NCBI GenBank assembly: GCA_028826165.1
Contig: JAPDFW010000054.1
Location: 372,001-436,000 of the forward strand
Reading direction: 5' to 3'
DNA length: 64,000 nt
From: Anaeramoeba ignava BMAN
Taxonomy: Eukaryota > Protista > Anaeramoebae
The notes beneath the pieces are model-generated. The model was not told where the DNA came from. It ran no database searches and worked only from the letters and a program-made list of their open reading frames with translations. The translations under genes were made by a program, and so were the position numbers. This document shows, piece after piece, positions 10,019 through 64,000 of the stretch. Each line of letters starts with the position of its first letter. The stretch's first letter is position 1.

Positions 10019-12952
10019 ATGGTTTGTTATTTATTTTCTTTTTTTTTTAAAAAAATTAAAAAAAAAAATTTTTTCAATTAAAATTTAACTTAAAAAAAAA
10101 AATAAAAACAAAATAAAAACAAAAACAAAACAAAACAAAACAAAATAAAATAAAACAAATTTAGTCTGAAATTCACAGTTAGTTTTAATTCAATCAAAAA
10201 ATCAAAAAATCAAAAAATCAATAAAAAAATAAATAATAAATAATAAAATAATTTTTTATTATAAAAGAAATTGCTGTTGTTGGAGGAGGTGGAGTTGGTA
10301 AAAGTTGTTTAATTATTCGTTTTTTAAATGATGTTTTCTTTGAACAATATGACCCAACAACTGGTAATTGAAAAAAAAAAAAAAAAAAAAAATCGTTTTA
10401 TTTTATATTTTTTTTAATTTTTATTTATTTTTAAAAAAGAGGAAAGATATCGTAAAGATTTTATAATTGATGGAAAAGCAACTTCTCTTGATATTTTGGA
10501 TACTGCTGGTCAAGAAGAATTTAAGACATTAGGAGATCGAGTAAATTTAATTAATTATAAATAAAATTTAATTAATATAATTATAAATATAATTATAAAT
10601 TTAATTATAAATTTAATTATAAATATAATTATAAATTTAATTATAAATTTAATTATAAATTTAATTATAAATTTAATTATAAATTTAATTATAAATATAA
10701 TTATAAATTTAATTATAAATATAATTATAAATTTAATTATAAATATAATTTTAAAGTTCTATAAATTTAATAAATATAATTATAAATAATTATAAATTAT
10801 ATAAATTTAATTAAATTTAATTATAAATTTAATTATAAATTTAATTATAAATTTAAATTATAAATTTAATTATAAAAATTATAATTATAAATATAATTAT
10901 AAATTAATTATAAATATAATTATATAAATATAATTATAAATTTAATTATAAATATAATTATAAAATAATTAATAATATAATTATAAATATAATTATAAAT
11001 TAAAAATTTAATTATAAATTTAATTATAAATATAATTATAAATATAAATATAATTATAAATTTAATTATAAATTTAATTATAAATATAATTATAAATATA
11101 AATATAAATAAATAAATTATAAATTTAATTATAAATTTAATTATAAATTTAATTATAAATTTAATTATAAAAATTTAAATTATAAATTTATAAATTTAAT
11201 TATAAAATTTAATTATAAATTTAATTATAAATTTAAATAAATTTAATTATAAATTTAATTATAAAAATTTAATTATAAATATAAATTAATTATAAATTTA
11301 ATTATAAATTTAATTATAAATTTAATTATAAATTTAATTATAAATTATAAATAAAATAATTGCGAATTATAAATATAATAATTATATAATTATAATTATA
11401 AATAAATTATAAATTTAATTATAAATTTAATTAAATATAATTATAAATTTAATTATATTTAATTATAAATAAATTTAATTATAAAAATTATAATTATAAA
11501 TATAAATTTAATTATAAATTTAATTATAAATTTAATTTATAAATATAATTAATAAAATTTAAATAAATATAAATATAAATTTAATTATAATTATAAATAA
11601 ATATTATTATAAATTTAATTATAAATATAATTATAAATATAATTATAAATATAATTATAAATTTAATTATAAAAATTATAAATTTAATATATAAATTTAA
11701 ATATAATTATAAATATAATTATAAATTTAATTTAAATTTAATTATAAATTTAATTATAATTTATAATTATAAATTTAATTATAAATTTAATTTTATTAAA
11801 TTTATAATTTAATATAATTATAAATTTAATTATAAATAAATTAATTATTATTAAATTTAAATTATAAATTTAATTATAAATTAATAAATTTAATTATAAA
11901 TTTAATTATAAAATTTAATTATAAATTTAATTATAAATTTATTATAAATATAATTATTATAAATTATAAAATAAATTATAAATATAATTATATAAATAAA
12001 AATTAAATTAATATTAATTATAAAATAATAAATTATAATTATAAATTTAATTATAAATAAAAATTATAAATATAATTATAAATTTAATTATAAAATAATT
12101 ATAAATTTAATTATAAATTATAAATTTAATTGGTATAATTAAATTTAATTATAAATATAATTATAAATTTTTAATTTTACTTATAAATTTAATTATAAAT
12201 ATAATACAGATAAATTTAATTATAAATTTAATTATAAATTTAATTATAAAAATATAATTATAAATTTAAATATAAATAAATTTAATTATAAATTTAATTA
12301 ATTTAATTAAATTTAATTATAAATTTAATTAAATTTATAAATTTAATTATAAATATAAATTTAATTATAAATTTAATTATAAATTTAATTATAAATTTAA
12401 TTATAAATTTAATTATAAATTTAATTATAAATTTAATTATAAATATAATACAGATAAATTTAATTATAAATTTAATTATAAATTTAATTATAAATTTAAT
12501 TATAAATTTAATTATAAATTTAATTATAAATCTAAAATTAGAATTTCCAAAAAATGGAAGGGTTTCTATGTGTATTAAGTGTAGCATCAAAACCAACAAT
12601 TGGAGAAATACGAACAATAATACAACAAATCAAAAGAATCAAAGGAGACCAAATAGTTGGAGTTTTAGTAGCCAACAAATGTGATATAGCTGAAGAAGAT
12701 CGAGTAGTTTCACTTTCACAAGCAGAAGAATTAGCGCAAGAATTTGGAATGAAATTCTTTAGTTGCAGTGCAAAAACAGGATACAATGTTCAAGAAGCAT
12801 TTTTCCAGTGTGTTAGAGAAGTAATAAAAGATAAAAGAGATCAAGAACTCAATCCAAGAAAACTTACTCGAAATAAATCTTCTGTTAAACAACGGCAAAA
12901 AGCTCGCAAAAAAAGACAATCTGAAAGTTCTGGTTGCTGTATTTTGATTTGA
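10019..12952 (+). CDS. Divergent Ras-family GTPase (5 coding exons)
   Basis: Exons 10019-10021 (ATG), 10165-10177, 10268-10363, 10440-10540 and 12542-12952 splice in frame to [49 protein letters not shown] (CAAX). The first two micro-exons are less certain. Confidence 0.88.
10541..12541 (+). repeat. 2-kb intron consisting of a degenerate 12-mer array (ATAAATTTAATT)n
   Basis: GTAAAT donor at 10541, TTAG acceptor ending 12541; the repeat runs essentially from donor to acceptor. Confidence 0.95.
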
Positions 12953-30757: not shown

Positions 30758-33700
30758 ATGATTCTTCGTGCTTTTTTTTCTTCAAAACCTAAAAACAAAT
30801 TTTCACTTCAAAGACTTGAGTAAAAATTGGTTTATTTCTAAAACAATCAAAAAATATCAATTTTATTATTTTTTTTTTCTATTTAAAATTTAATTTTTAA
30901 ATTTTTTTTTTTATTTGATGAAAAAAAAATTTTTTTTTCAAAATGATTAATTAAAAATTTAAAAAGATATTTACATAAAATTATTAAAAACAATAAAGTT
31001 TATAATCGATCAAATGGAAAAATTATTGTTGAAACTCTTCGTGAAATTTCAGAATTAATGATTTGGGGTGACCAAAATAATGAGAAAATTATTGAGTAAT
31101 TCAAATCAAATCAATTCAAATCAAATCAATTCAAATCAATTCAATTCAAATCAAATCAATTCAATTCAATTCAATTCAATTCAATTCAAATCAATTCAAA
31201 TCAAATCAATTCAAATCAAATCAAATCAAATCAATTCAAATCAAATCAAATCAAATCAATTCAATATTCAATTCAAATCCAATAAATCAATTCAAATCAA
31301 ATTCAAATCAAATTCAAATTCAATCAAATTCAAATCAATTCAATTCAATTCAAATTTCAAATCAAATCCAAATCAAATCAATTTCAAATTCAAATTCCAA
31401 ATCAATTTCAAATTTTCAATTACCAAATTCAATTTCAAATCAATTCCAATTCCAATCAAATCAAATTCCAAATACCTCAAATCAATTTCAATTCAATTCA
31501 ATTCAATTCGAATTCAATTACAATTCCAATTCAATTTCAATTCAATTCCAATTCAATATTCAATTCAATTCAATATTCAATTCAAATCAAATAAAATCAA
31601 ATCAAATCAAATTTAATATCAATTATTTATTCGTCAATTCAAATTCCAATTTCCAATATTCATTTCAAATTATTCAATTCCAAATTCAAATCAAATTCAA
31701 ATCAAATCAAATCAAAATCAATTCCAAATCAATCAAATTTTCAAAAATTCAAATTTTTCAAATCAATTCAAAACCCAAATCAATATTCAAATTCAAATCA
31801 AATCAAATCAAATCAAATCAATATTTTTAATATCCAATTCAATTCAATTTCAAATCAAATCAAATCAATATTCAATATCAATAATTCCAAATCAATTTCA
31901 ATTCCAAATCAAATTCAAAATCAATTCAAAATTCCAATTTCAAATCAAATCAATTTCCAAATCAAAATCAAATTCCAAATCAAAAAATTCCAATTCAAAT
32001 TCAATTCAATTCAAAATTCCAATTTCAAATCAAATTCAAATTCAAATCAAATCAATTTCAAATCATCCAATTCAAATTCCAAATCAATTTCAATTCACTC
32101 AAATTCAATTCCAATCAATTTCAATTCAATTCAAATTCAAATATTCAATATTCAAATCAATTTCAAAATTCAAATTCAATTCAATTCAAATTTCTCAAAT
32201 CATTCAAATTCAAATCAATTTCAAATCAAATCAAATCAAAAATCAAATCAAATCAATTTCAATCAATTCAATTTCCATTCAAATCAATATTTAATATTCC
32301 AATTCAAATCAAATCATTTCAAATCAAATCAATTCCAAATTTCAAATATTCAATTTCAATTCAATTCAAATTCAATTCCAATTCAATTCCAATTCAATTC
32401 AATTCAATTCCATTCAATTTAATATTCAAATCAATATTCAAATCAATTTCAATTCAATATTCAATTCAAATCAAATTCAAATCAATTCAAATCAAATCAA
32501 ATCAAATCAATATTTAATATCCAATTCAATTCAAATCAATTCAATTCAATTCAAATCAATTCAATTCAATTCAATTTTTAATATCCAATTCAATCCAATT
32601 CAATTTTAATTTTGAATTTAAATATTATTTTAAAATATATAAAGTTGGTTCTTTGAAAAGAATATTATGGCATTCTTTCTTAGTTTTTTAGATCAAAAAA
32701 CACCAGTTGAAATTAAAAAACAACTTTTACAAACAATATCAATAATGTTCGAAAATATCAAAACACAATCAGCAATTTATTATTTACTTTCAAACAATCA
32801 TATAAATTCAATAATTGAACATGAATTTGATTTTTCAGACGATGAAGTTTTAGCATATTATATTACATTACTAAAAGCTTTATCTCTTAAACTAAACAAA
32901 GATACAATTCAATTTTTTATTGATGAAGTAGATTATATTATTTTATATTATTTTTTCAAGAATTCTTTTATTATTAATATTTTATTATCCTTTATGTTCG
33001 TTTTGAATTTTAGAAAACTAAATCTTTTCCTTTATATACAGAATCTGTGAAATTTTTTAATCATAAAGATTTTATGGTTAGAGTTGCAGTTAGAACAATA
33101 ACTCTTAATGTATTTCGAAGTAAAGGAAATATCCAATTTAAAAATAAATATTCAATTAAATATTCAAATAAATATTAAAAATAAATATTAAATTAAATAT
33201 TCAATTAAATATTAAAATAAATATTCAATTAAATATTAAAATAAATATTAAAATAAATATTAAAAATAAATATTAAAATAATTTAAACAGTAAACTTGGA
33301 TATAATTAGAGAAATTGTTCTTTCAGAAGATATTGCTCCTTATTTTCTTAATCTTGCTTGTTTTATTTATCAAAATTGTGTTTCAATTCAAAATGTTTTA
33401 GATAAATCATCGTAAAAATCAAAATTAAAATCAAAATTAAAATCAAAATTAAAAAATTTGAAGAAAATACTTTAATCTAAATTTTAAATTTGTTACTACT
33501 GTTGTTTTTTTTTATATTTTAATGATAAAAGTTATACAAAATTGCAATGGGTTGATGATCAATTATTTGCTCAACTTGATAATTTATATTATTTATCTGA
33601 TATTTTCAGATTAAATATTCCTGAATTAAACAAAAGTCTTTCAGCAAATTTAATAAAAAATTTATTTATTCTTCTTGTTGAAGTTTTAAATTCAAATTCA

Positions 33701-36246
33701 AATCAAATTCAAAATGAAATTCAAAATCAAAATCAAAATGAAAATGAAAATGAAAATCAAATTCAAATTCAAATTCAAAATCAAAATCAAATTCAAAATC
33801 AAAATAATCAAAATAAAAATAACCAAAATGAAAATCAAAATCAAATTCAAAATCAAAATCAAAATCAAAATCAAAATGAAAATCAAAATCAAAATCAAAA
33901 TCAAAATAAAAATAATCAAAATGAAAATCAAAATAAAAATAATCAAAATAAAAATCAAAATAAAAATAATCAAAATAAAAATCAAATCAAAATCAAAATC
34001 AAAATGAAAATAAAAATAAAAATCAAAATCAAAATAAAAATCAAAATCAAAATAAAAATCAAAATAAAAATGAAAATCAAATTCAAAATCAAAATCAAAA
34101 TCAAAATCAAAATCAAAATCAAAATAAAAATCAAAATAAAAATAAAAATCAAAATCAAAATAAAAATCAAAATCAAAAATAAAATTAAAAATTCAAAATA
34201 TATTTAAAAATGAAAATCAAAATATATTTAAAAATCAAAATCAAAATACATGCCAAGATCAAAACCCTAAAGTAGATATAATTATTAATTAACAAAAAAA
34301 AAAAAACTTTTATAAAAAAAAAATTAAATACTTTTTTTTCTTTATAAAAAAATATCATTTACAGTATCAAATATCACCAGTTCTTTCTTTATGTTTATTA
34401 GCACAATCATTTCATGTAATTTCATGTGTTGATTTAGTTAATGAACTTGCTGAAGTTTTATTTGAATCGAAATTACCTAATATTGAAAAATATAATAAAA
34501 TAATTTCAACACCAACAAGAAAAGTTAAAAAACCAACAAGAAGTATTAGTTTTTCTTTATTTAGCGATGAATTTACAAAAAAGAAGGAATCTTTATTTAA
34601 TGAATCAAATTTATTTCCCAAAATGATTCGTTCAGTTTCAACAACATTTTCACAACATAATGATATGAATGATGATGATAATGATGATGATTTAGTAGTG
34701 AAAATTTTTGTATCAGATTTTGTTAGTCAAATTGTTGAAAATTCTTTAGAAAAAATGAAAAAGAAAAATATTAAATCTATCAGGAAAAAGCAAAAAAGAA
34801 GGAAAAAATCAAATTTATCAGGAAATTTTGCTAAAAACAAAATCATTTCATATCTTGAATCTCAAGATGAAAGATTTGTGTTATTTTCGATGTGTTTATT
34901 TTATTCAATTATCAAACACAAAAGTAATTTGTTTTTTTTTCAAAGAAGAACAAAAAAAAAAAGTAACTTGTGTTTTTAATTGTAAATTCTTATTGAAAAT
35001 ACAAACAAATTTAGCAATATCAAAGTATTTGTTGATTAAACATGATATCCTTCCAGCAAAATTTGTTAAAACTCAAAAAATTTTTCAATCTTTAACTCAT
35101 GAAAATGATTCAACTTCAGATTTTTCAAGATTTTCAAAAAAATCAGGAATTTTTCAACATTCTTTGAATGAGAATCAAAATTTACAAGAAGAAAAACAAT
35201 TTGATTATCCGATTTGGCTAATTGATAAGTTATTGAAAATATTTTTTAGAAGACCTTTTTGTTGTTATCCAATTTATCAAGTCTGCTTCAATTTAATTAT
35301 CCAATTAGTTTTTATAAGCAAACATTCTGGACCTTTTTTAAATTCAAAACATCAAGAATTATTCGATGTAAAAATTTAATCAAAATTTCATCAAAATTTA
35401 AAAATAAATTGAAAAACAAAATATTCATTTAGGATGCTTGTGATTTAATATCAAATGATTTAAATGAACATTTACTCAAAAATTCAATTTCTACAATTGA
35501 ATTCTTTGAAAATGAATTTTCTAGTTTTGAATCAAGAACTTTTAGTTTTGAAAAAATTCTTCGGAATCCAATTTTATTAAAACCATTTTTAAATGATAAT
35601 TTTTATGGAATTGGTAAAAAAAAACACAAGAAAAGAAATTTTTTTTTTGTTCCACTTTTTTTAATCAAACAAATTTTTTTTTTGTTTCAAATTAGATTTA
35701 TTTTTTAGACATGCATTTGGACCAAATGAACAAATTATAAAAACCTGTCAGTTATTTTTGATATTAAGAAAATTGAAGAATAAATTAGATTTAAAAACAG
35801 AAGAACTTCTTCCGTTAAAAGAAAAACCAGAACCTGAATGGATGAAAGAGGGAAAAGCTTTTGATTCACAATCAAAAGATATAATTCAATGTGAAAAAAT
35901 AATGGAAAATCCACAAAACAATAAAATTGTGAAAAATCACTTAGTTTTTATTGAAGGTTATATTGTTTTTCTTGATTTAATTTCTTCTGATTCTGGATTC
36001 CCTTCAACACTTATTAAATCCTTTATTCAAATTTCGAAAATTCAAATTAAACTGTTAGAAGAAGAAAGAATTTGGAAAATTTCTTCTTCTGTTGATTTTG
36101 ATTTGAATTTGAAACTCAGATTTGAAAATCAAACTTCTTATAAAACAGCAAAACAAGTTTTAGAACAAGAAAAATTATTTGTTAATCAATTTAAAATTAA
36201 TCAAATGGAAATTTTATTGAATGAAATGAAAAAGAAAAAGAAATGA
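30758..36246 (+). CDS. CLEC16A: CLEC16A/TT9/gop-1 (FPL domain) protein, about 10 exons
   Basis: Spliced N-terminus [96 protein letters not shown] is the FPL signature. Contains an N/Q tract (about 33690-34250) with apparent slips. Confidence 0.9.
31096..32644 (+). repeat. 1.55-kb intron of (CAAAT/CAATT)n pentamers
   Basis: GTAATT donor at 31096, AAAG acceptor ending 32644; flanking exons join in frame. Confidence 0.93.
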
Positions 36247-59401: not shown

Positions 59402-62400
59402 ATGAATTTCATTTTCTTTTTTGTTTTTTTAATAATTTCTTTACATTTAATTCAAGCAACAGATTATCCAAATATGTTTGAGATATCAACAAGACCTTGG
59501 CTTTATTCTTTATCACAAAAATATGGACGTTCAATTACAAAACTCACGTATTTATTTTTATAATTAAATTTATAATTAAATTTTTATTTAATTTTATTAT
59601 TTAAATTTTTAATTAAATTTTTATTTAAATTTTTTAAGTGAAATTCCTGATGCTGAATTTGAAAACCTTGCAAATCAAGGAATTGATTTAGTTTGGATGA
59701 TGGGAGTTTGGCAATTAGGAGCTTATGGTAAATATTTTGAAATTATTAATTTTATAATTTTTATTTTTTTTTATTTTTTATTTAGGTCTTAATTATGATA
59801 GAACTGACCCAGACCTTTTGAATTATTATAGTCAAGTTTTACCTGGTTATACTCAAGATGATATTATTGGTTCTCCTTATGCTGTTGTTGATTATACTTG
59901 TAATTCTGAAATTGGAACAGATGATGATCTTAAATGGTTACATTCTAAATTAAATTCACTTGGAATGAAATTGATGCTTGATTTTGTAATTGATTTAATA
60001 TTTAATTTATTATTTAATATTTAATATTTATTTAATTTATTATTTAATATTTAAATTAATATTTAATTTAATATTTAATTGATTTAATATTTAATTTAAT
60101 ATTTAATTTAATATTTATTATTTAATATTTAATATTTAATTTAATATTTATTATTTAATATTTAATATTTAATATTTAATATTTGATTTAATATTTGATA
60201 TTTAATATTTTATTTATTTATTATTTAATATTTAATATTTAATATTTAATATTTATTATTTAATTTAATATTTAATTAATTTAATATTTTATTTAATATT
60301 TTATTTAATATTTAATTGATTTAATATTTAATTTAATATTTAATTGATTTAATATTTAATTTAATATTTAAATTAATATTTAATATTTAATTGATTTAAT
60401 ATTTAATTTAATATTTAAATTAATATTTAATATTTAATTGATTTAATATTTAATTTAATATTTAAATTAATATTTAATATTTAATTTTTATTATTTAATA
60501 TTTATTATTTAATATTTAATTTAATATTTATTATTTAATATTTAATTTAATATTTAATTGATTTAATATTTTATATTTAATATTTAATATTTAATTAATT
60601 TAATATTTTATTTAATATTTAATTGATTTAATATTTAATATTTAATATTTGATTTCAAAAGGTACCAAATCATTCTGCAGTAGATTGCCCTTGGACTTCA
60701 AGTAATATGGATTATTATATTCGAGCACCAAAAGGAACAGAACCACCTTATGATCCTTCAAAATATCTTTCAAATGGAATTGGTAATTAAAATTCATTAT
60801 ATTTTTTTATATATTTATTTTTATATATTATTTTCATTTTAATTAAAATTAGCGTATGGAGGTGATATGTATGATGGAAGTTGGAAAGATACAGCTCAAT
60901 TGTAATTTTAATCATAAATAATCAAGAATTCTTCTTTTTTTTTAATTTTACTTTTTATAATTTAATACAAAAATTTTTTGATAAAATAAAATAAAATAAA
61001 TAATCAATAAGGAATTATTGGAATATGGATTTAAAAGCACAAAGAATTGCACAAATGAAACACATTGCATCTTTATCAGTAAATAAATTATAAATTAATT
61101 ATAAATTATAAATTATAAATTTTTAATTCTAATTTTCATGTTAATTTAGGATGGAATGAGATGTGATATGGCAATGCTTGTAAAAAATCATTTTAAACAT
61201 TTAAATTTCAACACATAAAAAAAAGAAAATATTAAAAATATAAATTAAAAATAACAAGATATTAAATGATATCATTGAACAAGCTTGGGGAACACAATTA
61301 TCTTCATGGGGTTATTCTCGACCATCAACTGAATTCTGGGCAGATGCAATTAGTGAAGTTAAACAAAGTTATCCAAACACTATTTTCTTAGCTGAAGTTT
61401 ATTGGGGAAAAGAACCTGATTTAATTTCTATGGGTTTTGATTATGTTTATGATAAAACTCTTCTTGATAATCTTGCTTCTTATAATTTGGCAAATATTTG
61501 GGGTTATCTTCAAAATATGCCATATGATATTAGTCATGCAGCTAATTTTATTGAAAACCATGATGTAAATTAAAATTAAAATTATAATTAAAATTAAAAT
61601 TAAAATTAAAATTAAAATTAAAAATAAAATTAATATTAAAATTATAATTAAAATTAAAATTAAAATTAAAATTTAAAATTAAAATTAAAATTAAAATCAA
61701 AATCAAAATTAAAATACAAATTATAATTAATATTAAAATTAATATTAAAATTAAAATTAAAATTAAAATTAAAATTAAAATTAAAATTAAAATTAAAATT
61801 AAAATTAAAATTAAAATTAAAATTAAAATTAAAATTAAAATTAAAATTAAAATCAAAATTAAAATTAAAATTAAAATTAAAATTAAAATTAAAATCAAAA
61901 TTAAAATTAAAATTAAAATTAAAATTAAAATTAAAATTAAAATCAAAATTAAAATTAAAATTAAAATTAAAATTAAAATTAAAATTAAAATTAAAATTAA
62001 AATTAAAATTAAAATTAAAATTAAAATTATAATTAAAATTAAAATTAAAATTAAAATTAAAATTAAAATTAAAATTAAAATTAAAATTAAAATTAAAATT
62101 AAAATTATAATTAAAATTAAAATTAAAATTAAAATTAATATTAATATTAAAATTAAAATTAAAATTAAAATTAAAATTAAAATTAAAATTAAAAATTAAA
62201 ATTAAAATTAAAATTATAATTAAAATTAAAATTAAAATTAAAAATTAAAATTAAAATTATAATTAAAATTAAAATTATAATTAAAATTAAAATTAAAATC
62301 AAAATTATAATTAAAATTAAAATTAAAATCAAAATTAAAATTAAAATTAAAATTAAAATTATAAAATTAAAATTAAAATTAAAATTATAATTAAAATTAT

Positions 62401-62927
62401 AGGAACCAAGAGCAGTTGCAAGATTTGGTTCCTGGCAAAAAGCAGATGCAGCAGCATTAGTAGCATTAACACTTCCAGGAATGAAATTTAGTTTTATGGG
62501 ACAATGGGACGGATATCACAACAAATTAGATATTCATTTACGACGAGCTGAATCTGAATCTGCAGTAGCTGATGTTCAAAGTTTCTATTCAAAATTTATA
62601 CCAATGATTTCAGAAGATGTTTTTTTAAAAGGAACTTATAGTTTAATTACAGGATGTGATAATAAAAATCAGTTATTGACTTGGAAATATTATCATGAAA
62701 ACCAAGACGGAACTTATGATAAGAGATTGTGTGTTATTAACTTCACTGGTTCAACAGCTTATGGTCATGTTGTTGTTTCTGATGCTTATGGAAAAGATGG
62801 AAGTGATAATATTGATATTACTGAATTATTCACTGGAACTGTTTATCAAAGATCTGCTAGTCAAATGAGAAGTGAAGGATTAACTGTTATCATTGATCCT
62901 TGGTTTGCTCAAATTTTCTCTTATTAA
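59402..62927 (+). CDS. GH13 alpha-amylase-family glycosidase with signal peptide, 9 exons
   Basis: Signal peptide MNFIFFFVFLIISLHLIQA; FEISTRPWL, VWMMGVWQ, GSPYAVVDY, LMLDFVPNH, DGMRCDMAML (nucleophile D), FLAEVY (acid/base E), FIENHDEPR; 8 GT-AG introns in frame. Confidence 0.93.
59986..60661 (+). repeat. Amylase intron of (TTTAATA)n-type units
   Basis: Seen directly. Confidence 0.88.
61565..62402 (+). repeat. Amylase intron of (AAAATT)n
   Basis: 838-nt intron splitting NHD|EPR. Confidence 0.93.
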
Positions 62928-63072: not shown

Positions 63073-64000
63073 ATGGAAAACAAAAAACAAATTACAGAAA
63101 TTCAAAAAATTTGTTTAATTGGAGAAAAGAATTGTGGAAAATCAACTTTGGTTCATAAATTTTTAACTGGAAAATTTGAAGAACTTAGAGCAACAATTGG
63201 AGGTAAAATAAAATTTAATTCAAAAACAAAAAACAAAAACAAAAACAAATTTTATTTAATTAATTAATTAATTAATTATTTATTTATTTATTTAAAAAGG
63301 TTTTGCTCAAAGAAAAATACCTTTTGGTTCAATTGAAGTAATTTAGAAAAAAATTCAAAATCAATTTAAAATTTTTTTCAATTTTATTTTATGAAAGGTT
63401 GAAATTCAAATTTGGGATACTTATGATCAAGAAAGATTTGGAAAATTAGCTCCAATGTATTATCGTGGTGCAAGAGCTATTTTAGTTGTTTTTGATATTA
63501 CAAAATATGTAAAATTTGGAATGATATTTTTAAATTTTTTCATTCCAAAAAAAAAAGTGGAATTGATTTGATTTAAATATTATTTTTTTATATTCAATAT
63601 TTGATTAAAAGGATACTTTTTTGAAAGCTGATCAATGGCTTAAAGATTCAATTGAAAATAATTCAAATCCACATATAATTTTGATTGGAAATAAATCTGA
63701 TTTAGAATTTGAAAGGAAAGTAGAAACAACCGAAGCTGAAGAATATGCCAAAAAAGTTAATGCAATTTATTTTGAAACTTCATCAAAAAATGGTCAAAAT
63801 GTTAAAGAAATTTTTATTGAAGCAGGTATAATGATTAATTTTAGAATTGAATTAAAGTTTTTGGATTGATATAAAATTGATATAAAATTAATATAAAATT
63901 GATATAAAATTGATTTAGAATTGAATTAAAGTTTTTGGATTGATATAAAATTAATTTAAAATTGATTTAAAATTGATATAAAATTAATATAAAATTGATT
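63073..64000 (+). CDS. Divergent Rab5/21/22-like GTPase, 3'-truncated by the window edge
   Basis: Spliced: [56 protein letters not shown]; a fourth intron starts at about 63826 and runs off the window. Confidence 0.88.

Follow-up and report, generated by a model that had tools for sequence, protein, structure and literature searches.

Codon usage is usually attributed to a mutation bias across the whole gene, to the supply of tRNAs or to expression level. Strand skews caused by transcription or replication are kilobases long, amount to a few percent and follow the direction of transcription or of the fork, with jumps at transcription starts and origins. Codon skews caused by exonic splicing enhancers in mammals and Drosophila are stronger next to long introns, peak ∼30-70 nt from the splice sites and are purine-rich at both exon ends. 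In budding yeast promoters, poly-T and poly-A are distributed asymmetrically around nucleosome-free regions (de Boer and Hughes, 2014; PMC4212969). Dictyostelium genes carry poly-T upstream of the transcription start and poly-A downstream of the transcript end; an A/T halo within coding exons is not reported in that work (Chang et al., 2012; PMC3371697).

We analyzed a 64,000-nt stretch of DNA (the window) from Anaeramoeba ignava BMAN (assembly GCA_028826165.1, contig JAPDFW010000054.1, positions 372,001-436,000 of the forward strand) and a sample of 264 kb around it, taken from this one contig and containing 56 clean genes and 9,264 fourfold A/T sites. In this DNA the silent choice of A versus T is best predicted by the distance and direction to the nearest long AT tract, with a shift of 15-25 points of A fraction. 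Tracts of at least ∼300 nt of almost pure AT, whether intron or spacer, carry a halo of ∼300 bp on both sides in the adjoining exons. A full-text literature search found no prior description of tract-anchored A/T codon polarity.

The halo resembles the yeast promoter pattern in being T-rich to the left and A-rich to the right of an AT-rich region, in its reverse-complement symmetry and in being tied to a DNA or chromatin feature and not to the reading frame; the nucleosome depletion is that of yeast. In yeast, however, homopolymer runs lie inside the depleted promoter region and extend over ∼100 bp, whereas here single silent positions are affected over ∼300 bp of coding DNA outside the tract. 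Unlike in yeast promoters, the halo is also found around long introns, and homopolymer runs contribute little to it. With Dictyostelium this DNA shares an extremely AT-rich genome and a choice of A versus T strand that marks gene boundaries. The Dictyostelium tracts are outside the coding region and oriented by transcription, whereas the halo lies inside exons, has the opposite sign at the adjacent boundary and resets at long introns.

Like transcription and replication skews, the halo is a local excess of one base over its complement whose sign flips at a defined DNA element, but it spans ∼300 bp, and within genes each long AT tract flips it. Like enhancer-caused skews, it is a silent choice that depends on intron distance and intron length; unlike them, it is least evident in the first 30 nt, has opposite signs at the two exon ends and affects gene ends too.

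Codon polarity along the amylase gene

The amylase gene was modeled independently of HMM prediction and checked by hand (Table 1). Its introns are 91, 58, 676, 70, 110, 71, 79 and 838 nt long with GT..AG borders throughout, and the product of 511 aa has no internal stops. By similarity to the catalytic domain, the gene probably belongs to the GH13 alpha-amylase family. The exon 3 translation matched Pfam PF00128 with E = 0.0021, a match that falls short of the curated cut-off, as expected of a 66-aa piece; further matches were to Taka-amylase chains and to the PDB entry 3dhu_A, an alpha-amylase (E = 2.8e-5). The translation of exon 9 has features like those of amylase C-terminal domains; exons 4, 8 and 9, queried one by one, gave no significant Pfam match. 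DFVPNH, GMRCDMA, AEVYW and ENHD, picked out by eye, are presumably the GH13 regions I, II, III and IV, respectively. ENHD closes exon 8. Intron 3 interrupts the DFVPNH motif, which indicates that it is a true intron.

Table 1. Position of the amylase gene, its coding blocks and long introns, and exons of two other genes (numbered from the first letter of the window; A/T, counts of A and T at fourfold sites)
Feature	Position	Strand	Observation
Amylase gene, 9 exons	59402-59547, 59639-59727, 59786-59985, 60662-60782, 60853-60901, 61012-61078, 61150-61179, 61259-61564, 62403-62927	+	HMM-independent, hand-checked model
Amylase block 1, exons 1-3, short introns 91 and 58 nt	59402..59985	+	Halves A/T 12/12 then 6/21: balanced, then strongly T-ending
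Amylase long intron 3, polarity reset	59986..60661	+	676 nt, GC 2%, sense strand T-rich, AT skew −0.20
Amylase block 2, exons 4-8, short introns 70-110 nt	60662..61564	+	Halves A/T 23/10 then 13/22
Amylase long intron 8, second reset	61565..62402	+	838 nt, GC 1%, (AAAATT)n-like repeat, A-rich, AT skew +0.31
Amylase block 3 (exon 9), long intron to stop codon	62403..62927	+	Halves A/T 24/10 then 7/23, full A-to-T polarity
Ras-like last exon after 2001-nt intron	12542..12952	+	12 A among first 13 fourfold sites; T-rich run at end; total 26 A / 16 T
CLEC16A-like exons 3-6, between 1549-nt and 682-nt introns	32645..33682	+	Fourfold A/T 16/8, 5/9, 3/9, 3/10: A-rich to T-rich

The numbers of fourfold sites ending in A and T were 9/6, 4/7 and 5/20 in exons 1, 2 and 3, respectively. 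After the 676-nt intron they were 14/6 in exon 4, 9/4 in exons 5-7 and 13/22 in exon 8, which has a T-rich end. In exon 9, following the 838-nt intron, the total was 31/33; the first 20 sites were nearly all A and the last 20 nearly all T. Both the gene model and these counts agree with the exons, long introns and polarity that an earlier note on this DNA had described from reading the sequence. Its further statement that one exon each of the Ras-like and CLEC16A-like genes restarts A-rich was likewise borne out (Table 1). Permutation of codons within each amino acid (synonymous shuffle) indicated that the A/T choice is clustered along the amylase gene (p = 0.00025 for the variance of a 10-site moving average; runs, p = 0.03; between-exon chi-square, p = 0.016). 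The tandem fraction of intron 8 is 0.83. Introns 3 and 8 have opposite AT skew and the same effect on flanking codons.

Long AT tracts and short introns in the 264-kb sample

Gene models other than that of amylase were HMM predictions from the DNA sequence alone. Introns of at least 300 nt were classed as long and those below 110 nt as short; a block was defined as a coding stretch between long introns, with exons joined across short introns. From the upstream to the downstream side of long introns the A fraction changed by +0.204, and 41 of 44 introns (93%) were positive (p = 9e-10). The change across short introns was −0.035 and not significant. The switch differed between the two classes (Mann-Whitney p = 5e-9), was correlated with log length (Spearman 0.42) and rose with tract length from 0 to 0.2, 0.3 and 0.49. 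Exons of the long-long class gave +0.159 in the 5' half and −0.172 in the 3' half, versus +0.012 and −0.014, i.e., no polarity, for the short-short class.

The block model gained 128 log-likelihood units, the any-exon-boundary model 72 and mRNA-position models 23-67. Relative mRNA position alone accounted for the gain of 23, and its coefficient was ∼0.05 once tract terms entered. Added to mRNA-position and short-intron terms, the long-intron terms gave chi2 = 126 (p = 4e-28), versus chi2 = 5 for the short-intron terms. An effect of mRNA position, or translation ramp, was rejected as redundant beside the tract terms. A reset at every exon boundary was also rejected on the basis of the short-short exons and the short-intron switch. 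The proposal of the earlier note that long AT tracts, and not short introns or mRNA position, organize the polarity is thus supported; the two accounts that it had named as fatal to this idea, mRNA position and any exon boundary, leave the long-intron residual in place.

The effect increased with tract length and decreased with tract GC, a behavior that AT DNA would be expected to show if it is fragile or nucleosome-free, and tandem-repeat content had no effect once length and GC were included (coefficient 0.056 ± 0.108). The switch was 0.28 in repeat-poor long introns (n = 9) versus 0.225 in repeat-rich ones (n = 13). Slippage-triggered error-prone repair, which the earlier note had offered as one cause, found no support in the tandem-fraction coefficient or in a domain search for Y-family polymerases: a six-frame, exon-by-exon search of the 42.8-Mb genome, which does not prove absence, returned no IMS or IMS_C matches.

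All five ∼50-kb pieces of the 264 kb showed the polarity, as did both strands, 45 of 53 genes and 71 of 89 blocks. A method based on ORFs only, without the HMM, repeated it (+0.080/−0.114). We sought AT-only in-frame tracts of at least 60 nt within exons as a natural control and found none in the 264-kb sample. These results confirmed that the tract-anchored A/T codon polarity is real and that it extends beyond the amylase gene.

Shape and base composition of the halo

Read on the coding strand, codons are A-ending after a long tract and T-ending before it. The halo is a plateau from ∼30 to 300 nt on both sides with a sharp fall near 300-310 nt, and it is weakest in the first 30 nt. It is not a boundary artefact, given this weak start, its presence at exactly placed stop codons and its repetition by the ORF-only method. 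Gene ends bordering long spacers behave like long introns, and their halo grows with spacer length; on the stop side it was −0.06 for spacers up to 300 nt and −0.23 to −0.27 for spacers of 300-1500 nt. Convergent gene pairs had a stronger stop-side halo (−0.21) than tandem ones (−0.05), both small samples, and this difference disfavors bidirectional promoter activity of the tracts. Beyond a short intron the 5' A-halo is mostly lost, including at sites that lie within 300 nt of the tract along the DNA (−0.04 ± 0.036 vs. +0.148); the 3' T-halo does pass across short introns. Cores of short introns had an AT skew of −0.13 in 3' zones and +0.11 in 5' zones (p = 0.045). Inside the long tracts themselves no polarity was detected, the A fraction being 0.52-0.60 at both ends. 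The region 10-75 nt upstream of ATG codons is T-rich (A fraction 0.33).

The shift follows a reverse-complement symmetric rule: on the strand that runs 5' to 3' outward from the tract, T, C and G give way to A. At fourfold sites in the 5' zone the increase in A comes out of C first, then T and then G; in the 3' zone it is T that increases. At twofold sites G was 0.062 in the 5' zone vs. 0.122 in the interior, and C was 0.102 in the 3' zone vs. 0.187. Fourfold GC was 6% near tracts vs. 16-22% far off. A simple cytosine-deamination (amino/keto) skew fits the twofold sites but not the fourfold sites, where the 5' zone keeps G better than C; a fuller description is therefore a change of every other base to A on the outward strand. 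The shift is seen in all eight fourfold families (e.g., ACA, 0.78 vs. 0.40), with a Cochran-Mantel-Haenszel z of 17.7 when stratified by family and next base. It is also present in every next-dinucleotide context. These stratified tests and the regression with tract terms indicate that the polarity does not arise from amino-acid content, the neighboring base or mRNA position.

Two further candidates were rejected. Spread of the tract's own A/T skew is contradicted by rho ∼0, T-rich and A-rich tracts giving the same halos. Avoidance of the poly(A)-signal-like AATAAA before tracts does not explain the shift, since AATAAA occurs at 1.13 per kb in the 3' zone vs. 1.28 in the interior and all contexts shift. 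AATAAA and its complement TTTATT trade abundance between the two zones. Homopolymer A runs differ modestly by zone (12.3 vs. 8.7 per kb).

Possible origins of the halo

Base composition gives the equilibrium state at the silent sites of one genome, in which mutation and selection are not separable. If the halo is mutational, a strand-polar DNA process of defined patch length would be recorded in the genome at base resolution, and intron length would shape exon evolution. If it is due to selection, each gene would carry chromatin or RNA-processing information at hundreds of silent sites. In both cases the halo bears on codon optimization, gene prediction and selection tests in AT-rich protists, and its amplitude is a simple assay, computed from sequence, that is comparable across species.

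We lean to a strand-asymmetric mutation or repair imprint anchored at the long AT tracts, and give it about an even chance of being correct. An imprint at the DNA level, as opposed to codon selection for translation, is suggested by the reverse-complement symmetry, a range that is equal and a size that is nearly equal on the two sides, the occurrence on both gene strands and at introns and spacers alike, and the indifference to tract skew. The skew of short-intron cores and the exchange of AATAAA and TTTATT between zones point the same way, as does a slight shift at codon positions 1 and 2 in the direction taken at silent sites (0.614 vs. 0.584, p = 0.053). Long AT tracts would exclude nucleosomes and be prone to breaks or gaps. 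The strand with its 3' end toward the tract could then become single-stranded time and again over ∼300 nt, a patch limited by chromatin, e.g., by short-range resection or in a gap, and would suffer cytosine deamination and base loss. Insertion of A opposite the damage on copying would produce G to A, C to A and T to A changes on the outward strand. Selection near splice sites and start and stop codons may damp the effect in the first ∼30 nt. The data establish that the halo exists and is anchored at the tracts; the mutational origin and the geometry of resection are what we infer. Several observations speak against the imprint, however. A purely mutational halo of this size needs a tract process that rivals the whole background mutation input. 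Stochastic resection should decay smoothly from a peak at the boundary, whereas the observed profile is flat, with a weak first 30 nt. The stronger stop-side halo of convergent gene pairs has no obvious place in the model. Polarity is absent inside the long tracts, and the stop of the 5' A-halo at a short intron conflicts with a model of pure DNA distance.

Break resection and a replication or chromatin boundary had been listed in the earlier note as alternatives to slippage; the direction of the base shift is compatible with them, but it does not discriminate between them. A Spo11 domain was not found in the genome search, and breaks, if they occur, would need another origin. In a stronger version of the mutation or repair imprint, which we regard as possible but doubtful, the halos would be the fossil of recurrent DNA opening: long AT tracts, also those within introns, would be preferred sites of Spo11-independent breaks, gaps or replication initiation, and a fixed patch of ∼300 nt (two nucleosomes) would rewrite silent sites strand-specifically and dominate codon usage. 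If so, the length of an intron would have a direct influence on codon usage in the neighboring exons and a slight one on their amino-acid content.

Selection for a chromatin code is an unlikely explanation. Here the long AT tracts would be nucleosome-free regions, and an A-rich outward strand over ∼300 bp (about two nucleosomes) would be selected, with remodelers reading A/T strand polarity to set the flanking nucleosomes, as the poly-T/poly-A of yeast brings to mind. The orientation is the same as in yeast promoters, T-rich to the left and A-rich to the right of the depleted region (PMC4212969), but the yeast asymmetry sits inside that region and not in nucleosome-covered coding DNA. The plateau ends near 300-310 nt, close to two nucleosomes, and paired nucleosomes with a 150-155 bp repeat are found in AT-rich Dictyostelium (PMC3371697). 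Reverse-complement symmetry and growth of the effect with tract length and AT purity also fit this explanation, and the weak first 30 nt could be a linker or a nucleosome edge. Selection would, however, have to act on hundreds of silent sites per tract. Moreover, the difference in homopolymer runs between the zones is only modest, and silent GC falls toward the tracts, which blurs the contrast between exon and tract.

We consider an RNA signal rather improbable. Exons facing long introns or transcript ends would need signals for exon definition or for elongation and 3'-end formation, purine-rich after the 3' splice site and U-rich before the 5' splice site or poly(A) region, with short introns relying on intron definition. 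The dependence on intron length, the lack of polarity in short-short exons and the confinement of the 5' A-halo to the exon touching the long tract are consistent with such signals. Purine-rich exonic enhancers, denser near long introns, are established in other eukaryotes. Enhancers act in the 30 nt next to the splice sites, however, and there the halo is weakest; its reach is 300 nt. Halos of the same size occur at the ATG and the stop codon and scale with the length of the spacer, which is outside the mRNA. The two halos mirror each other in range and size, something that two unrelated signals would do only by chance, and the 3' halo crosses short introns and marks their cores. AATAAA was not specifically avoided in the 3' zones. 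The exon zones on the two sides of a given long intron had no specific complementarity, and RNA pairing that bridges long introns is unsupported (−32.1 kcal/mol for true vs. −32.2 kcal/mol for mismatched exon pairs, p = 0.69).

That the tracts act as replication origins is quite improbable in our estimation. The first few hundred nucleotides of each outward strand would in that case be the product of a separate polymerase that inserts A and then hands over to the main replicase. The geometry fits, since the outward nascent strand gains A, as do the scaling with AT-tract length and purity and the fixed short range; fission yeast uses AT-rich islands as origins. However, the opposite sign would be expected from damage to the lagging-strand template exposed at origins, and with thousands of tracts each would fire rarely, so that so large a compositional effect is hard to reach.

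An absence of any tract effect, with the pattern due to chance, hand-picked codon runs, an mRNA gradient (translation ramp) or a gene-prediction artefact, is hardly credible: the earlier note did quote only short codon runs, gene models were predicted and mRNA position does gain 23 log-likelihood units, but the amylase shuffle, the 41 positive long introns of 44, z = 17.7, the redundancy of the mRNA-position terms and the repetition in five pieces, on both strands and by the ORF-only method all stand against it.

Codon polarity in the amylase gene and the gene sample

The earlier note had proposed that silent sites in the amylase gene pass from A-ending to T-ending codons and reset at long introns. 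Its gene model was correct: nine exons encode 511 aa with zero internal stops, and all introns are GT..AG. Six of these are short (58-110 nt). The other two are almost pure AT, one T-rich (676 nt, GC 2%) and one an A-rich (AAAATT)n-like repeat (838 nt, GC 1%). The predicted product is a GH13-type alpha-amylase; with exons searched singly, exon 3 matched Pfam PF00128 (E=0.002) and the PDB alpha-amylase 3dhu_A (E=3e-5), and the translation contains DFVPNH, GMRCDMA, AEVYW and ENHD motifs.

Fourfold A/T counts were 9/6, 4/7 and 5/20 in exons 1-3, which the 676-nt intron follows, 14/6, 3/2, 4/1, 2/1 and 13/22 in exons 4-8, which the 838-nt intron follows, and 31/33 in exon 9. For the three blocks (exon stretches between long introns), the 5' and 3' halves gave 12/12 and 6/21, 23/10 and 13/22, and 24/10 and 7/23, respectively. 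Measured against synonymous codons shuffled within each amino acid, the clustering is non-random (moving-average variance p=0.00025; runs p=0.03; between-exon heterogeneity p=0.016), which bears out the polarity. The A-rich restarts described for the Ras-like and CLEC16A-like exons also held on checking.

Since a single gene could not separate the rival explanations, we built an HMM gene finder (codon model, noncoding Markov model, splice-site matrices and a shadow state for antisense genes), trained iteratively on the window plus 200 kb upstream (contig positions 172001-436000). It reproduced the amylase model exactly, recovered the Ras and CLEC16A exons, and returned 73 genes with 250 introns (median 99 nt; 71 introns of at least 300 nt). 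Filtering left a clean set of 56 genes, 35,360 codons and 9,264 fourfold A/T sites; the main caveat for the 264-kb results is that these are predicted HMM gene models without RNA support from one contig. The CLEC16A-like gene was excluded because its model contains a 1-nt "intron", probably a frameshift (in the assembly or genuine) or a small intron modelled wrongly.

Features of the window
Feature	Position	Strand	Remark
Ras-like exon, start	12542
CLEC16A-like exon, start	32645
CLEC16A-like model, 1-nt "intron"	34963 (34962-34964)		model in frame only with this "intron"
Amylase gene	59402-62927	+
Small GTPase gene	63073-63869		four exons; Rab-like, GxxxxGKS motif

Dependence on long AT tracts

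Over all fourfold A/T sites of the 56 genes the A fraction was 0.500. It was ~0.60 from 30 to ~350 nt past long introns and 0.30-0.37 at 30 to 180 nt ahead of them, and similarly ~0.60 after the ATG and ~0.31 before stop codons. The per-intron switch (downstream minus upstream A fraction, family-adjusted) confirmed resets at long and not at short introns (long vs. short, p=5e-9). It grew with intron length (Spearman 0.42 against log length, p=2e-7), the pooled switch being 0 below 110 nt, 0.20 at 300-800 nt, 0.30 at 800-1500 nt and 0.49 above 1500 nt (n=4).

Silent-site polarity by intron and exon class, and nested logistic models
Measure	Class or model	Value	Remark
Per-intron switch	<110 nt, n=71	-0.035	44% positive, p=0.21
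Per-intron switch	110-299 nt, n=25	-0.003
Per-intron switch	>=300 nt, n=44	+0.204	93% positive, p=9e-10
Exon halves (5'; 3')	long-long	+0.159; -0.172
Exon halves (5'; 3')	long-short	+0.084; +0.042
Exon halves (5'; 3')	short-long	+0.016; -0.135
Exon halves (5'; 3')	short-short	+0.012; -0.014
Log-likelihood gain over null	relative mRNA position	23
Log-likelihood gain over null	ATG + stop kernels added to mRNA position	67
Log-likelihood gain over null	any exon boundary	72
Log-likelihood gain over null	two-parameter block model	128

Gene ends obey the same length rule: the stop-side halo was -0.06 for spacers of up to 300 nt and -0.23 to -0.27 for spacers of 300-1500 nt. The amylase 3' halo adjoins a short spacer, since the small GTPase gene starts only 146 nt downstream of the stop. 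Among the 56 genes the T-rich stop-side halo was -0.21 in convergent pairs vs. -0.05 in tandem pairs, a difference that spacer length may confound.

The note had named relative mRNA position or any exon boundary as sufficient alternatives, and neither was: long-intron terms added to a model of mRNA position and short introns gave chi2=126 (p=4e-28), whereas short-intron terms added to mRNA position and long introns gave chi2=5 (p=0.08). Site-level p-values are inflated by autocorrelation, which leaves the per-intron, per-block and per-gene tests unaffected. The shift appeared in all eight fourfold families (~0.2-0.4 each), likewise in Ile ATA/ATT, in each next-dinucleotide context and in a test stratified by family and next base (z=17.7). 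It was replicated in each of five ~50-kb pieces, for genes of either strand, in 45/53 genes and in 71/89 blocks, and an HMM-free check on long open reading frames only gave +0.080 / -0.114, with 0.003 in the interior. Boundary misprediction is ruled out as the cause, since the first 30 nt show the smallest effect and since it is also present at stop codons, which are placed exactly. A strong neighbour effect was also seen at fourfold sites of the 56 genes, ~80% being A-ending if the next codon begins with A and 15-50% if it begins with T, G or C.

Halo anatomy and candidate mechanisms

The halo forms a plateau from ~30 nt to ~300-310 nt and then falls to zero, with a best-fitting range of 300 nt. 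It strengthens with tract length and weakens with tract GC; no scaling with block length and no dependence on the tract's own A/T skew was seen. At fourfold sites, A rises in the 5' zone at the cost of C, then T, then G, and T rises in the 3' zone at the cost of A, G and C; the twofold sites of the 5' zone have half as much G, and those of the 3' zone little more than half as much C. Taken jointly, these shifts mean that the strand running 5' to 3' outward from the tract acquires A in place of each of the other three bases. A weak shift of the same kind is seen in short-intron cores (skew +0.11 vs. -0.13, p=0.045) and at codon positions 1 and 2 (p=0.053); 5' zones are richer in Lys, Glu and Thr, and 3' zones in Phe, Asp, Pro, Val and Trp.

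Read on the coding strand, the "A first, T last" rule equals its own reverse complement. On the plus strand, every long AT tract has a T-rich flank to its left and an A-rich one to its right, whatever the gene orientation and whether the tract is intron or spacer. The halos have equal range and nearly equal size on both sides, which fits a tract-centred process at the DNA level. From sequence composition in 264 kb of one contig, we infer two geometries that would give the observed sign. In one, the strand with its 3' end toward the tract would be exposed as single-stranded DNA, by resection that starts at breaks or gaps within the tract, or in a gap behind forks stalled there; in the other, an A-inserting polymerase would make the outward-growing new strand. 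Our weak preference is for a chromatin-limited imprint of ~300 nt linked to breaks or gaps. The note's view of long tracts as the organising centres is supported; its slippage option gains no support, since tandem-repeat content of the tract had no effect once tract length and GC were included.

Selection for a nucleosome-positioning code is an alternative: the orientation matches the poly-T/poly-A asymmetry of yeast (PMC4212969), and the sharp ~300-nt edge could be explained as a nucleosome pair (compare PMC3371697). An RNA-level, exon-definition signal retains some weight, since a short intron halts the 5' A-halo (-0.04 vs. +0.148) and lets the 3' halo pass; two separate RNA signals, however, would need coincidence to give equal range and near-equal size. 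Near short introns (60 nt) there is a weak reverse tendency, non-significant alone (A fraction 0.46 just after and 0.54 just before), which may mask the 5' halo beyond them. Lagging-strand template exposure at origins and non-template strand exposure in sense transcription would each miss the observed sign on one side or both, and translation-level explanations fail since mRNA contains no introns. Full-text searches yielded no prior description of silent-site A/T polarity resetting at long introns.

Genome setting and further asymmetries

The genome assembly comprises 42.8 Mb in 147 contigs; the window has ~19.6% GC and uses the standard genetic code, and its introns are GT-AG. An anaerobic protist is probable, given nine or more [FeFe]-hydrogenase loci and zero matches to fungal (CBM10) dockerins in the whole genome. 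In the repair-gene survey suggested by the note, MutS was found at six loci and uracil-DNA glycosylase (UDG) at two in the six-frame genome search. The Y-family polymerase domains IMS (PF00817) and IMS_C (PF11799) and the Spo11 domain (PF04406) were not found in the whole genome, absences that are only provisional because the searches were six-frame and exon by exon, so that split domains can be missed. Given such a search, the survey is suggestive of an anaerobic protist whose set of damage-tolerance and meiotic-break genes is reduced.

Fourfold GC climbed steadily away from long AT tracts and gene ends, from 6% (<100 nt from the nearest one) to 16% (500-1500 nt) and 22% (>1500 nt); in the 56 genes this GC depression forms a second halo, longer-ranged than the A/T polarity. 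No internal polarity was seen within long tracts. The sense strand of 53 long introns in the 264 kb is uniformly A-rich (A fraction 0.59, median AT skew +0.25), a transcription-oriented asymmetry separate from the exon halos. In the 56 genes no A-rich counterpart was seen past stop codons to a strongly T-rich sense strand 10-75 nt upstream of the ATG (A fraction 0.33); this T-rich zone resembles the poly-T tracts that precede Dictyostelium transcription starts.
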